Shown here: piece by piece, positions 28,598-44,260 of the stretch
Position numbering within the stretch: position 1 is the stretch's first letter
Layout of the letters: each line of letters starts with the position of its first letter
NCBI GenBank assembly: GCA_038496445.1
Contig: JALMLS010000155.1
Coordinates: 1-64,000, forward strand
Reading direction: 5' to 3'
Length of the DNA stretch: 64,000 nt
Source: Trichosphaerium sp. ATCC 40318
Lineage: Eukaryota > Protista > Tubulinea
Program-made: the position numbers and the translations under genes
Notes under the pieces: model-generated
Seen by the model: the letters and a program-made list of their open reading frames with translations, nothing else
Database searches by the model: none
What the model was told of the DNA's origin: nothing

Positions 28598-29885
28598 GAG
28601 ACGACCTTTTAACAAAATAAAAAGAACAATATAAACTACGCCTTTGGTAACTTGCTACTCTTGATAGATGGATTTATTCATAATGACAATGATTATTCGA
28701 TAGTACTGGCAAAGTCAAAGAAAGCTTTGTGTGCTTCTTTGTACACAGGATCTTTCTTGATTTTTTTAAACAAAGAAGCAATCTTTTTAGGAAGAGCTTC
28801 CTTGTATCCAGTACCAGTAGCTTGAGCGAGAGAAACACAAAGTGCATAATCAGCCATGGATACAGAGTATCCAACCAAGAAACGTGACTTTTTGAAGTAG
28901 TTCTTCTCATAGAATGCTAACTGATCAAAAGAGTAAGCAAATGCCAAAAACAGTTTCTAAAAATACCTCAGCTTGTAGTTTATCGGTGATCTCTTTCAAC
29001 TTTTTAGGACATGGATCTCTTGGATTTGGTCCCTTCGAAACAAAGTAATTCTCAACAGCAAACTTGTTGCAGGTGTTGAAATCTTGTATGTTACCTAAGA
29101 ATAGCACTTGAGTCACGGACAACAACATCTCCTTCAGTTACAGATGGTACTTGGTGTTTTGGGTTTATTTTTAAATAAGCTTCTTGTTTATGTTCACCGT
29201 TGGCTAAATCTACAGGCTAAGAGATGGTTAGATCTCATTGTTTCGGTCCACAGCTTAGTACCTTGAGAGTTATGTCAGTGTCAGTGGCAAGAGCACCAAT
29301 ATGAGCAATACGACATGGAGCAGATAGGAAAAGGTAGTGGATAGTAGCCATTGAGGTTATGGTTTGAGATAATGATCCAAGTCATGTCAAGTCAGGAAAG
29401 ACGGAACAGTTCTTAAAAAGGAAAGTCAGCCGAGATTTTTGCTTAAAATGCCCGCAATGTAAGAATATAAATATATTCCTCGGTTTCTCTTAAATGTAAA
29501 CCGATATTAAGGATAATAGTTTACTGTAATAAATTGTCTTCAGAGGACATTAAAATGATGGGTGATCGAAAACCAAACTGGTTTTGAAAATTCAATAAAA
29601 ATAATAAAAACACCATTAAACGCTTTATAAATATTACAGATTATTGTCCGCTATGACAGATTGTAAGTTCAACATGGCTTTGAAAATTAAACTGTAAATT
29701 GTAGTTTCAGTTCTCTATTATAATGGAGTAGCCCCACTTCAATATCTATCATTAGATGCGTAGCCTTTACAAGCGTACCCAAAAACTGTATGGCTATAAG
29801 CTATAAATAGTAAAAAGGACGGTAAAGGATATATGGTGTACAAGGAACGCATGTGAAGGATTTTCAAGGAGAGACAATCAAAAAC
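28598..29885 (-). repeat. Left arm of a large inverted duplication (GST locus plus upstream region)
   Basis: Reverse complement matches 36637-38186 closely by direct inspection, apart from one internal deletion. Confidence 0.9.
28693..29351 (-). pseudogene. Glutathione S-transferase duplicate with a ~235-bp internal deletion
   Basis: Nearly identical to 37194-38095 but lacks 37463-37697 (junction ~29081), which removes exon 3 and the next acceptor. Read-through hits ATT CTT AGG TAA. Confidence 0.85.
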
Positions 29886-30089
29886 AGCAATTACGCCGAG
29901 CAATAATTGGCGTGGACATTTACCTTGAATGTTTTAGCTACAACCAATACATTATGCCAATTGTAGAGTTTTGAAAGTGATTCCAAAGTGATTTCTACAT
30001 GAGTTTTTTATCTCTTGATGTTGTAGGTGCACTTTTTGCAATTTTGTTATTTCGCAAGCGCACCTTAGATGTATTACAACCAATACTTA

Positions 30090-32064
30090 GTGAAAAGTAT
30101 AAAATGTCCCAATTCTAGGTAAAATGTCCCCACTTTTCAATTTTTAAAATGCCTCGCAGAAGTGCCGCAAAGGCTAAAAACATGGCAGAGGCCACAAAGG
30201 AAGTACTTTATAAACTAAAGAAGCGTAAACCTTCACAAACACTCTCAATTCGTCAAATTTGCATCACAGTGGCTAAAAAACACTGTGTTAAATCAGAATC
30301 ACTACGAAAGCGTGTTCAGAGGGCATTTGCAAAGGAGAATTCGGAGAATTTCAAATCTCATGGCAACCAACTTTTTACAGATTTTGAAGAAGAAATGTTG
30401 GTTGGCTACTGTTTGAGTTTTAGCGGGCGTCATATGCCTCTATCACGTGCAGCCTTGATATCTATGGCACAAAGTCTGTACAAGAAGAAGAAGTCGACCA
30501 GTATGGAAGCTTGGTGTGATGGCTTCACTGAAAGACACAATATTGAACTCAAAGCCACTGTTTCGAAGACAATTCGCCGCTGCCGTGTATCTCCTGTCAC
30601 TCTGCCATGTGTAGAAGCTTGGTGTGATGGTTTTGAGCGATTCTCAGAGATGTATTATATGAACCCAGATTTGATGTTCAATTGTGACGAAAAGTTGATA
30701 ACAGCATCAAGTGACAAGTATCAACACATTACCTTTCAAGATAGAACGATGAAAATTGCTGGGCGGCTGAACAATAACACAAGCAGCCCTCTCACGTTGA
30801 TTCCGTTTGTTTCAGCCTCTGGACGCGTACTGGTGTCAATTTATATAATGGCAGCAAAAAACAAAGGTGATGAACAAAAAGTGCATCAAATGACAGTACC
30901 CAGACCAACAAATACCCGCTCTTCATGCCCTAGATACTATATATTTCATGGTAAAGGGTATGTGACCAACGAAATTTGGCCAAAAATTCTTGATGTGTTC
31001 TTAAAGCACTTGAAAATTTTTCAAGGGGACAGGGTTGCATTTTTATTCCTTGATAGATTGGCCAGCCACATTAAAACAGAATCGTTACAAAAATGCCTTG
31101 AACAGCATGTACACACTATCACATGGGTGCCTCATACCTCACATTTCACGCAACCCTTAGATGACAAGCCATTTGCTACCCTAGCTCAGGCATATAAATT
31201 AAACAGGAAAATTACAATTGAAAGTGGCACAGAGATCAAACATAAAACACGACGTTATGACATAATGGCTGTTGCAGCTGCAGAGACCAAAGCACTGTCT
31301 CCCAAAATCTTAAAATCGGCATGGAAGTCCGTGGGCATTGTACCCTACAACAGAAAGTTGATCTTAAATCATGCTTCAAAAAATGTAGGGGTCCAACCTA
31401 AACAATCACCTTCCTTCATCACCGATACTGCTAGAAAAGCCAAAAACGCTATGGATGAGCTATACAGCCACAGCAATCAAGTAAATGCCCTAACAATCGG
31501 TTCAATGACAGTACCAAAAGGGGATGCTTATATTGCTACCCAAATGGTTGAATTAGCAAAAAAAAAAAAGATAGATAAAGAACAAGAAATTAAACACAAG
31601 GCAGAGCTAAGGCAACTCAAGAGAGATGCTAAACAAAAAAAAATTGAGGAGGAGAATGTTCGTAGAGAGGTGACAAGACAGAAAAAAGAAAAAAAAAAAC
31701 AGGAAAAAAAACTTGCCACTGCTAAGAAGAAGTACAAAAATGAATGTGAGACCTGTCAGATATGTGGCGAGCGCTTATGGAGGGGAGGATCTACGTGGGT
31801 GTGGTGTGAAGTCTGTGATCAGTATGGGTCATGCCCATGCTGCTTAAAAGAATTTGATGGAAAAAAAATGGTTGAAATGCACGAAGAAGAATGTACAGGA
31901 GGGCGATCTTTTGGTAACTGGTACTCAACGCAAATGGACACATCATGTTAAAATCAGAATAAAAAAGTATTTTTTTTAAGAGCGTAGCATCAATTTTTTG
32001 TTCAAAAAAAGTGTTGAAAAGTGGGGACATTTTACCTGTGGTTGGGACATTTTATACTTTTCAC
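30090..32064 (+). mobile_element. Intact pogo/Fot1-type DNA transposon with 51-bp TIRs and TA target-site duplication
   Basis: TIRs 30090-30140 and 32014-32064 (GTGAAAAGTATAAAATGTCCCAA...GGTAAAATGTCCCCACTTTTCAA, 4 mismatches). TA at 30088-89 and 32065-66. Confidence 0.93.
30149..31951 (+). CDS. DDE_1/CENP-B-family transposase (DD35D) with C-terminal coiled coil and PHD-like zinc finger
   Basis: Intronless 600 aa; HTH_Tnp_Tc5-like FTDFEEEMLVGY...W..GF..RH; triad NCDE / FLDRLASH / QPLD with 35 residues between D2 and D3; CQIC...WVWCEVC...CPCC. Confidence 0.92.
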   Translation: MPRRSAAKAKNMAEATKEVLYKLKKRKPSQTLSIRQICITVAKKHCVKSESLRKRVQRAFAKENSENFKSHGNQLFTDFEEEMLVGYCLSFSGRHMPLSRAALISMAQSLYKKKKSTSMEAWCDGFTERHNIELKATVSKTIRRCRVSPVTLPCVEAWCDGFERFSEMYYMNPDLMFNCDEKLITASSDKYQHITFQDRTMKIAGRLNNNTSSPLTLIPFVSASGRVLVSIYIMAAKNKGDEQKVHQMTVPRPTNTRSSCPRYYIFHGKGYVTNEIWPKILDVFLKHLKIFQGDRVAFLFLDRLASHIKTESLQKCLEQHVHTITWVPHTSHFTQPLDDKPFATLAQAYKLNRKITIESGTEIKHKTRRYDIMAVAAAETKALSPKILKSAWKSVGIVPYNRKLILNHASKNVGVQPKQSPSFITDTARKAKNAMDELYSHSNQVNALTIGSMTVPKGDAYIATQMVELAKKKKIDKEQEIKHKAELRQLKRDAKQKKIEEENVRREVTRQKKEKKKQEKKLATAKKKYKNECETCQICGERLWRGGSTWVWCEVCDQYGSCPCCLKEFDGKKMVEMHEEECTGGRSFGNWYSTQMDTSC

Positions 32065-32837
32065 TAACTGATGCTTTGAGGAAAAAAAGCGCTTAGAAAT
32101 CGCTTTGGAATCACTTTCAAACCGCTTTCCAAGTGATTCTAGAGCGTTTCTACCAAGGCGTTATGAAGCGAAAATAAGCGCTTTCAAATCACTTTCGAAT
32201 CACTTGGAAAGTGCTCGTTATGCACAGAAAACCGTCTTGAGTTGCTGTAGCACAAGCAAGGAGCACTTCCAACAGACAGAAACTACGAAAGTCGTGTATA
32301 CAACGCTAAATGAAAGAAAATCAAATCACCGTATCAGGAACCACTTGTGTCTCAGTGACACTTCTCATTCTTTCTATGTCACTTTTTGAAACAAGAACAG
32401 TTGCTCACTGCAATGCTCTTGGAAACCAACCAAAATTTCTTGCTTCAACTGTGTTAAGATGTGGTTGTCCAGGGCAATCTACTTACCAGTAAAAACACGG
32501 AATGTTTCAGAATATTTCGTGTTTTTTTCGGAATCAATTCATTTGATTCTGTACATCTCCTTAATTAAAAGAAAGTAGTGACTGTGTAAGGAGTAAATAA
32601 TGTAACTTAATGTACACAAGCTCACTTAGAGCAGAATAAACTAGTTAATATCACGTGACGGTTTTAGTCTTTACAACTGGTGTTCAAAAAGAAGCCAACA
32701 ACTGGTGAATGTTCACTGAATGCACATACTGGTAAATTGCGGACCGGTTACTGACCGAAAACCGATATCTTGAAACCGGACCGGTATTTTCCACCTTTAG
32801 TCAACGTCTTTAATAGCGTTGGTATTTGGAAACACAC

Positions 32838-36636: not shown

Positions 36637-38186
36637 AACTGTTTTCTTGATTATCTCTTACCTTGTACCACTCCTTCACATGCGTTCCCTGTACACCACA
36701 TATCCTTTACCGTCCTTTTTTCTATTTATAACTTTGTAGCCATACAGTTGGGTACGCCTGTAAAGGCTACGCTTCTAATGATAGATATTGAAGTGGGATG
36801 TGATAGCGGGTGTACTGTAAATTTATAGCTTCAGTTCTTTTATTATAACGGAGTCTCTAATGAGTTTGTGTAACTAAATATTTGTAATTAGCGGACAGGA
36901 CAATAATTTGTAATATTTATAAAGCGTTTAATGATGTTTTTTTATTTTATTGAATTTTCAAAACCAGTTTGGTTTTCGATCACCCATCATTTTAATGTCC
37001 TCCGAAGACAATGTATTACAATAAACTATTATCCTTAATATCGGTTTACATTTAACAGAAACCGAGGAATATATTTATATTCTTACATTGCGGGCATTTT
37101 AAGCAAAAATCTCGGCTGACTTTCCTTTTTAAGAACTGTTCCGTCTTTCCTGACTTGACATGACTTGGATCATTATCTCAAACCATAACCTCAATGGCTA
37201 CTATCCACTACCTTTTCCTATCTGCTCCATGTCGTATTGCTCATATTGGTGCTCTTGCCACTGGCACTGACGTAACTCTCAAGGTACTAAGCTGTGACCG
37301 AAACAATGAGATCTAACCATCTCTTAGCCTGTAGATTTAGCCAACGGTGAACATAAACAAGAAGCTTATTTGAAAATAAACCCAAAACACCAAGTACCAT
37401 CTGTAACTGAAGGAGATGTTGTTGTCCGTGACTCAAGTGCTATTCTTAGGTAACATACAAGAACACATTTCCTCTGCAAAGACAAAATAATTTTAATGCT
37501 TACACCCTAAAAATAGGTATTTTAGTATTCAGAATCCGTCACCTATTTACCCTATAAACAATGCAGTAGCACTGGCTCCAGTACGTTTACAAACTTTTAT
37601 GAATGAATTGATCAAAACACAATATCACGTTTTGTGAAACGATAATTAAGTTGTTTTTTAGATCGACTCTGCATATGAATCTATTCGTAGTGATATCTTC
37701 AACACCTGCAACAAGTTTGCTGTTGAGAATTACTTTGTTTCAAAGGGACCAAATCCAAGAGATCCATGTCCTAAAAAGCTGAAAGAGATCACCGATAAAC
37801 TACAAGCTGAGGTATTTTTAGCAACTGTTTTTTTGCGTTTTCTGCATTTGCTTACTCTTTTGATTAGTTAGCATTCTATGAGAAGAACTACTTCAAGAAG
37901 TCACGTTTCTTGGTTGGATACTCTGTATCCATGGCTGATTATGCACTTTGTGTTTCTCTCGCTCAAGCTACTGGTACTGGATACAAGGAAGCTCTTCCTA
38001 AAAAGATTGCTTCTTTGTTCAAAAAAATCAAGAAAGATCCTGTGTACAAAGAAGCACACAAAGCTTTCTTTGACTTTGCCAGCACTATCGAATAATCATT
38101 GTCATTATGAATAAATACATCTATCAAGAGTAGCAAGTTACCAAAGGCGTTGTGTATTGTTCTTTTTATTTTGTAAAAGGTCGTCT
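36637..38186 (+). repeat. Right arm of the inverted duplication
   Basis: Inverted match to 28598-29885. Confidence 0.9.
37194..38095 (+). CDS. Glutathione S-transferase (theta/delta-like), intact copy
   Basis: MATIHYLFLSAPCRIA...VDLANGEHKQEAYLKINPKHQVPSVTEGDVVVRDSSAIL; C-terminal FLVGYSVSMADY. Confidence 0.9.
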
Positions 38187-40419: not shown

Positions 40420-41063
40420 ATGGCATTTGAAGCAGCGCAGCAATTAATGTTACTCGGAATTGGAGAGTATGCGTTTAATTCCTTTAACTTGCCTCAACAA
40501 GTTGCAACAGAAGTTGCAGAGGAAGTTGCAGAAGAAGGTGTAGAAGAAGTCGAGAACAATTCTAACTCAAAACGGCCGGGTAGAACCAGAATACCAGAAG
40601 AAGCAAAGAAGATACTTCTAGAATATCCTTTAACACTGTATATCTAATTTTCGCTATGCTTATCCTTTAATTTCTTTAACTCTAACTAACATTCTACAAA
40701 ACGCAACCTTATCCCACAAACGACGAAAAGACGCAAATATGTAACCAAACGGGTCTAACATTAAAGGCAGTGAACAATTGGTTCCAAAACCAACGCAACC
40801 GCAATAACGCGACGAAGAAAAGGCGAGGACCATTACCGCGTAAAACAACAGTCAAAAGGCGACGTAAGGCGCCAGTCAAGACGCAAGAAGCCCCGAAATA
40901 CGAAAATGCGCCTACGTCATTCATACCACCAGCTGTTAAGATACAACTTCAACAATACAGGCGCATAAAGGTAGAGCACTCAGCGCAGTTGGGCGTCCCG
41001 CCGAATTACAACCCACCATCATACAACCCTCCCTCATACCACCCACCATCGTACCCGCACTAA
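40420..41063 (+). CDS. Homeodomain transcription factor, 2 exons
   Basis: After removing the AT-AC intron: [51 protein letters not shown]; Pro-rich PPSY tail. Confidence 0.92.
40623..40690 (+). other. U12-type AT-AC intron
   Basis: 5' ATATCCTTT, branch TTCTTTAAC 10 nt upstream of terminal AC. No GT-AG solution restores the homeodomain. Confidence 0.92.

Positions 41064-42631: not shown

Positions 42632-44260
<1,629 letters not shown>

Follow-up and report, generated by a model that had tools for sequence, protein, structure and literature searches.

A predicted U12-type AT-AC intron at homeodomain codon 18 of a solitary homeobox gene in Trichosphaerium

Minor introns in Amoebozoa and the Trichosphaerium locus

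U12-type introns are defined by their 5' splice site and branch-point sequence rather than by their termini, and the optimum distance between branch point and acceptor is 11-13 nt (PMC3584512). That such introns are rate-limiting is a general hypothesis of the literature (PMC3584512). Minor introns and their snRNAs have been documented in the amoebozoans Physarum polycephalum, Protostelium aurantium, Pelomyxa schiedti and Acanthamoeba castellanii (Larue and Roy 2023, PMC10639083), a survey whose main text does not name Trichosphaerium. Minor introns can be very short, and the lengths of minor and major introns correlate across species (PMC10639083). The published draft genome of Trichosphaerium comprises 70.87 Mb in 710 scaffolds, with a GC content of 37.69% and a mean intron length of 75 nt (PMC10521059).

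We analysed a stretch of 64,000 nt from Trichosphaerium sp. ATCC 40318 (the window; GC content 35-40%). Positions 40420-41063 on the + strand very likely constitute a two-exon gene encoding a 191-residue typical (60-residue, non-TALE) homeodomain protein, the sole intron of which, 40623-40690, is of the U12-type AT-AC class. Like described U12-type AT-AC introns (PMC3584512), this intron has the donor ATATCCTTT, a TCCTTAAC-like branch site, a spacing of 11-12 nt, no polypyrimidine tract, AT-AC ends and a phase other than 0. It differs from them by a C-to-T change in the branch site and by its very short length of 68 nt, and it is predicted from DNA. The length is unremarkable given the host mean of 75 nt (PMC10521059) and the cross-species correlation just cited (PMC10639083). 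The suggestion of the initial annotation that the intron could rate-limit a transcription factor is reasonable as a proposal. Compared with the survey of Amoebozoa (PMC10639083), the locus belongs to the same supergroup, the snRNAs are detected by the same Rfam models, and short minor introns again accompany short major ones. There was no sign in the Trichosphaerium genome of a mass expansion of minor introns like that of Physarum, only tens of strict pattern matches being found.

Gene structure, intron motifs and reading frame

The features of the gene and of its intron are as follows.

40420 to 40622, + strand: exon 1, 67 codons plus GA of codon 68 (from translation)
40623 to 40690, + strand: predicted U12-type AT-AC intron, 68 nt, phase 2, in homeodomain codon 18 (helix 1)
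40623 to 40631, + strand: 5' splice site ATATCCTTT, agreeing at every position with the donor consensus of U12-type AT-AC introns, /[AG]TATCCTT
40661 to 40670, + strand: second copy of TATCCTTTAA, a 10-nt direct repeat of 40624-40633, inside the intron and 37 nt past the donor copy
40672 to 40680, + strand: branch-point sequence TTCTTTAAC, with one C-to-T change relative to the consensus TTCCTTAAC (8/9 positions match)
40689 to 40690, + strand: 3' splice site AC, the sole acceptor that lies past the stop at 40683-40685 and keeps the frame set by the 40622 donor
40691 to 41063, + strand: exon 2, last base of codon 68 and 123 codons, stop at 41061-41063 (from translation)

Exon 1 starts with the ATG at 40420, in a frame that is open from 40387 (11 codons upstream of the ATG), and ends with ...AAG ATA CTT CTA GA at 40622. 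Its N-terminal part is acidic, and its final 18 residues (the split codon included) form homeodomain positions 1-18 from 40570 onward. Exon 2 opens with A TTC TAC AAA ACG CAA CCT TAT CCC, which reads (E)FYKTQPYP and continues through WFQNQR. It contains homeodomain positions 19-60 (to 40817) and a basic region. When exon 2 alone was searched against Pfam, it matched Homeobox_KN (PF05920) at 6.4e-13 and Homeodomain (PF00046) at 4.6e-9, and its second residue fell on Homeodomain profile position 19, the conserved aromatic of helix 1, placing the start of the exon at about profile position 18/19. The helix 3 residues W48, F49, N51 and R53 of the homeodomain are present (WFQNQR), and the three-residue loop insertion of TALE homeodomains is absent. 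The translation of exon 2 has no methionine in its frame, so this exon is not translatable alone. At the C-terminus of the protein there are three tandem PPSY motifs (41013-41054), which presumably fit the PPxY ligand of WW domains. About 2 kb downstream of the gene, on the same strand, lie exons of a ketol-acid reductoisomerase (43238-44195; KARI_N by atlas features, at very high confidence) with short introns between them.

In database searches the two exons were used singly rather than as the joined protein. A word search with exon 2 against a protein collection gave no match, a null result that says little, and exact look-up in the protein collection found none of three ORFs from the window.

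The strongest constraint on the position of the intron comes from the reading frame. When the frame of exon 1 is extended into the intron, it meets a stop at 40645. The frame of exon 2 has a stop at 40683-40685 and is open only from 40686, so the acceptor must fall within 40686-40691. There is no AG within 40622-40728, and the sole GT in 40600-40740 is at 40638; a GT-AG intron is therefore unable to join the two exons. An AC at 40685-40686 was considered as the acceptor and rejected, as its use causes a frameshift and it lies 7-8 nt from the branch adenosines. In contrast, excision of 40623-40690 keeps the frame, with GA joined to A as codon 18 (Glu). Exon 1 then supplies exactly 18 homeodomain residues, with Arg and Leu at the conserved homeodomain positions R5 and L16, and F19-Y20 follow. 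The initial annotation had proposed that the GA/A join yields an uninterrupted homeodomain, and this was borne out: the frame is open, and the register of 18 + 42 residues equals that of an intronless paralog, L013.

These boundaries were weighed against others. The GT at 40638 could be joined to the AG at 40729-40730 to give a short product without the homeodomain, or the intron could be mostly retained as a switch. The GT at 40638 and the AG at 40729 do both exist, and U12 introns have been reported to be slowly spliced and retained (PMC3584512). However, excision of 40638-40730 removes helices 1-2 and shifts the frame, so that a stop is reached in fewer than 10 codons, and GTATATCT is a poorer donor than the GTAAAA and GTGAGT of two major introns. 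The conserved protein results from the AT-AC junction, as paralogs show. We thus consider different boundaries, or predominant retention, highly improbable, and we favour the AT-AC intron at 40623-40690.

The donor, branch point and AC acceptor named in the initial annotation were all found in place within this 68-nt interval by direct reading and by script. The TCCTTT of the donor is complementary to AAAAGGG at the 5' end of the U11 candidate of this genome. At the branch site, the T that replaces C in TTCTTTAAC would still pair, as G-U, with the U12 box GUAAGGA. The putative branch adenosine is at 40678 or 40679, a distance of 12 or 11 nt from the intron's 3' end, and both a polypyrimidine tract and an AG are absent from that end.

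With a T in front of it, the second TATCCTTTAA motif is not usable as an AT or GT donor. The USSE (mentioned in PMC3584512), a splicing enhancer that binds the U11 snRNP and is found in the SNRNP48 and RNPC3 genes, consists of tandem U12-type 5' splice-site motifs. The window transcript likewise has two TATCCTTTAA motifs, 37 nt apart, although this is a resemblance only. Unlike in the USSE, the first copy here is the actual donor and the other falls within the 68-nt intron, and this internal copy is missing from both paralogous AT-AC introns described below.

Taken alone, the intron motif does only moderately better than chance. ATATCCTT occurs six times in the window against about two expected, and a relaxed AT-AC pattern that covers 40623-40690 gave 18 matches genome-wide compared to seven for a backward control. 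The motif itself is therefore of moderate specificity, and the call of an AT-AC intron is settled by the coding context. The other five ATATCCTT sites in the window were examined as introns, and only those at 29832 (- strand) and 36700 (+ strand) had a plausible branch site. Both were rejected, as they lie inside the arms of an inverted duplication without coding support.

This inverted duplication (28788-29860 / 36672-38000) has arms that are, piece by piece, 94-99% identical, with about 6.8 kb between them. In both arms ATATCCTTTACC is followed about 330 nt later by TCCTTAAT and 10 nt ending in AC. These stretches are probably not introns, since there is no coding support on either side of them. 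The window also holds a pogo/Tc5-like DNA transposon at 30078-32076, with a 600-residue ORF (30149-31951) that matches DDE_1 (8.6e-10) and HTH_Tnp_Tc5. On either side of the ORF is a 63-nt terminal inverted repeat (30078-30140 and 32014-32076), the two being 87% complementary.

Homeobox paralogs with AT-AC introns at codon 18

Searching the assembly in six frames with exon 2 as the query identified a dozen homeobox paralogs. Exon 2 aligned without gaps, from F36, with the intronless paralog L013, in which FYTVQ comes after 18 homeodomain residues. Two TALE homeobox genes assigned to contig C292 have AT-AC introns at codon 18, in phase 2, directly before W19-Y20. The search with the strict AT-AC pattern independently matched the DNA just upstream of one homeobox paralog. 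The two introns are as follows.

C292 22969 to 23031, - strand: AT-AC intron of gene L027, 63 nt; GAC TT / ATATCCTTT ... CCTTAAC plus 10 nt, AC / A TGG TAC
L018 1372 to 1478: AT-AC intron of gene L018, 107 nt; GAA GA / ATATCCTTA ... CCTTAAC plus 10 nt, AC / T TGG TAT

The downstream exons of both introns start at Homeobox_KN profile position 1 (Pfam). In all three introns (window, L027 and L018) the distance from TTAAC to the exon is exactly 10 nt, and TTAACTCTAAC is common to the window intron and the 63-nt intron of L027. The sister genes L014-L017 are intronless at codon 18 and read continuously as ...VMEDWYTP..., which verifies the AT-AC junction predicted for L018 (...VMED/WYTP). In two further homeobox genes, L008 and L012, the introns are of the ordinary GT-AG kind, about 50-60 nt long, and sit at another position. 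The comparison of intron positions proposed in the initial annotation, run on the genome's own homeobox paralogs, thus found the same codon and phase in two TALE genes.

The TALE genes form a cluster encoding proteins of about 160-190 residues at C292 20137-23100 and 35257-36479, with near-copies on C301 and C205 (L011, L014-L018 and L027). The members are mixed, some with and some without the AT-AC intron at codon 18, and L016 consists of two tandem copies. A word search with an intronless member of the cluster against a public protein collection found no relatives.

The window gene shares codon 18, phase 2 and the AT-AC subtype with the C292 TALE genes. In contrast to those genes, which have three extra loop residues, tandem clusters and intronless sisters, it is solitary and has a 60-residue homeodomain and an unrelated N-terminus. 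A shared MAFEA start had suggested that exon 1 might be related to the clustered TALE genes. This was rejected: BLASTP gave no match, and searching the genome turned up no paralog of the exon elsewhere. Because exon 1 lacks a paralog, the window gene appears to be a solitary typical homeodomain gene outside the clustered TALE family. The codon-18 position common to TALE and non-TALE genes may be inherited or convergent.

The solitary state of the gene also bears on whether it is functional. The locus could be a decaying or never-expressed homeobox pseudogene, in which the 68 nt are a chance U12-like insertion and there is no splicing. The word search with exon 2 matched no database protein or transcript, exon 1 has no paralog and the gene no allele, and the relaxed motif has about seven chance matches genome-wide, all of which would fit such a pseudogene. 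The search for an ortholog or allele of the homeobox gene that could show purifying selection likewise found none, leaving the gene a singleton. However, both exons maintain long open frames in a genome of 37% GC (67 codons plus 11 upstream in exon 1; 123 codons in exon 2). The interruption restores both the frame and the exact 60-residue register, and it lies at the same codon and in the same phase as the AT-AC introns in two other homeobox genes, a combination that a random insertion would not produce. We therefore regard a pseudogene as very unlikely.

Collectively, restoration of frame and register, AT-AC introns at the same site in two paralogs and intronless sisters that read through support the assignment of 40623-40690 as a U12-type intron.

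Minor-spliceosome components and significance

Components of the minor spliceosome were sought in the assembly (70.3 Mb, 642 contigs) by means of Rfam models and Pfam families, with the following results.

U11: 66.4 bits, above the Rfam gathering cut-off of 39
U6atac: 51.9 bits, above the Rfam gathering cut-off of 33
U12-like gene: 39.2 bits, below the Rfam cut-off of 53; full length, with UGAGUAAGGAAAAUAA, the Sm site and the 3' stems intact
PDCD7 (U11/U12-59K protein): 42.5 bits, above cut-off
U6atac candidate, L002 1501 to 1621 (C20 307774 to 307894), + strand: the only one, with a poly-T terminator

The Rfam model detected no U4atac in the assembly. A pattern built from the complement of the U6atac candidate gave two matches against two for controls, neither of which was convincing, and zf-U11-48K had no Pfam match in the assembly. 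The initial annotation had held that the organism keeps a minor spliceosome and had looked to an Infernal search for its snRNAs. Of the components sought here, U11, U6atac and PDCD7 were above cut-off; the U12-like gene fell below it and U4atac was not found.

The U6atac candidate is unusual in having GAGCCGAGAGAUGG in place of the conserved GAAAGGAGAGAAGG, so that its 5'-splice-site-pairing box reads GCCGA where the strongly conserved consensus is AAGGA, a box that pairs with the CC of the 5' splice site. The minor introns of the genome keep canonical ATATCCTT/GTATCCTT donors despite this box. A pattern search for a second, more canonical U6atac recovered only the C20 locus.

Strict U12-intron patterns were about ten times more frequent genome-wide than in backward controls (AT-AC, 9 compared to 1; GT-AG, 24 compared to 2). 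One strict AT-AC match interrupts a BTB domain, with the next exon beginning at BTB_2 profile position 10. A further match divides ...EGANTMD / I / GRVV... in a gene that is read as a putative thiamine-diphosphate enzyme; Pfam gave no score to those short exons.

These components bear on whether the intron, although real, could be a rare U2-type AT-AC or otherwise non-canonical intron that the major (U2-dependent) spliceosome removes. Such a route would be in keeping with the CTAAC motifs at 40682-40690, which resemble branch sites of the major type, with a U6atac candidate whose 5'-splice-site-pairing box is not the canonical one, and with the failure to detect U4atac. However, the branch-to-acceptor spacing is short, there is no polypyrimidine tract or AG, and the recognition boxes of the genome's U11 and U12 are intact and complementary to the motifs of the intron. 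The TATCCTT donor is not known from U2-type AT-AC introns. The window intron contains both of the sequences that define the U12 type, the 5' splice site and the branch-point sequence (PMC3584512). Removal by the major spliceosome thus seems most improbable, and assignment to the U12 type is preferred.

We infer from the sequence that RNA splicing takes place at 40622^40691 and that removal of 40623-40690 would be carried out by the minor spliceosome. In the proposed mechanism, U11 would pair with the donor ATATCCTTT and U12 with TTCTTTAAC, so that a branch adenosine is bulged out 11-12 nt before the intron's 3' end. Cleavage after the AC would then join GA to A, creating homeodomain codon 18 (Glu) in helix 1.

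A more far-reaching reading takes the codon-18 AT-AC intron to be an old shared trait of a lineage-specific homeobox expansion which, with the second U11-type motif, acts as a life-cycle retention switch gating regulators, and takes the odd U6atac to reflect an altered minor-spliceosome chemistry. We consider this reading unlikely. The window intron is very probably real but ordinary, since related organisms are known to have both such introns and the machinery that splices them, and both are also present elsewhere in the same genome, and it leaves existing knowledge of minor splicing unchanged. The points of note are the intron position shared between TALE and non-TALE genes with intron-free sisters, the internal TATCCTTTAA and the unusual U6atac box. 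In practical terms, a gene finder restricted to GT-AG introns cannot build the window homeobox gene, nor at least two other homeobox genes and probably tens more. For the biology of the group, the locus is one more data point on minor splicing, from an amoebozoan lineage that has been little studied, and the three same-site AT-AC introns together with several intronless sisters provide a small natural series for minor-intron loss.
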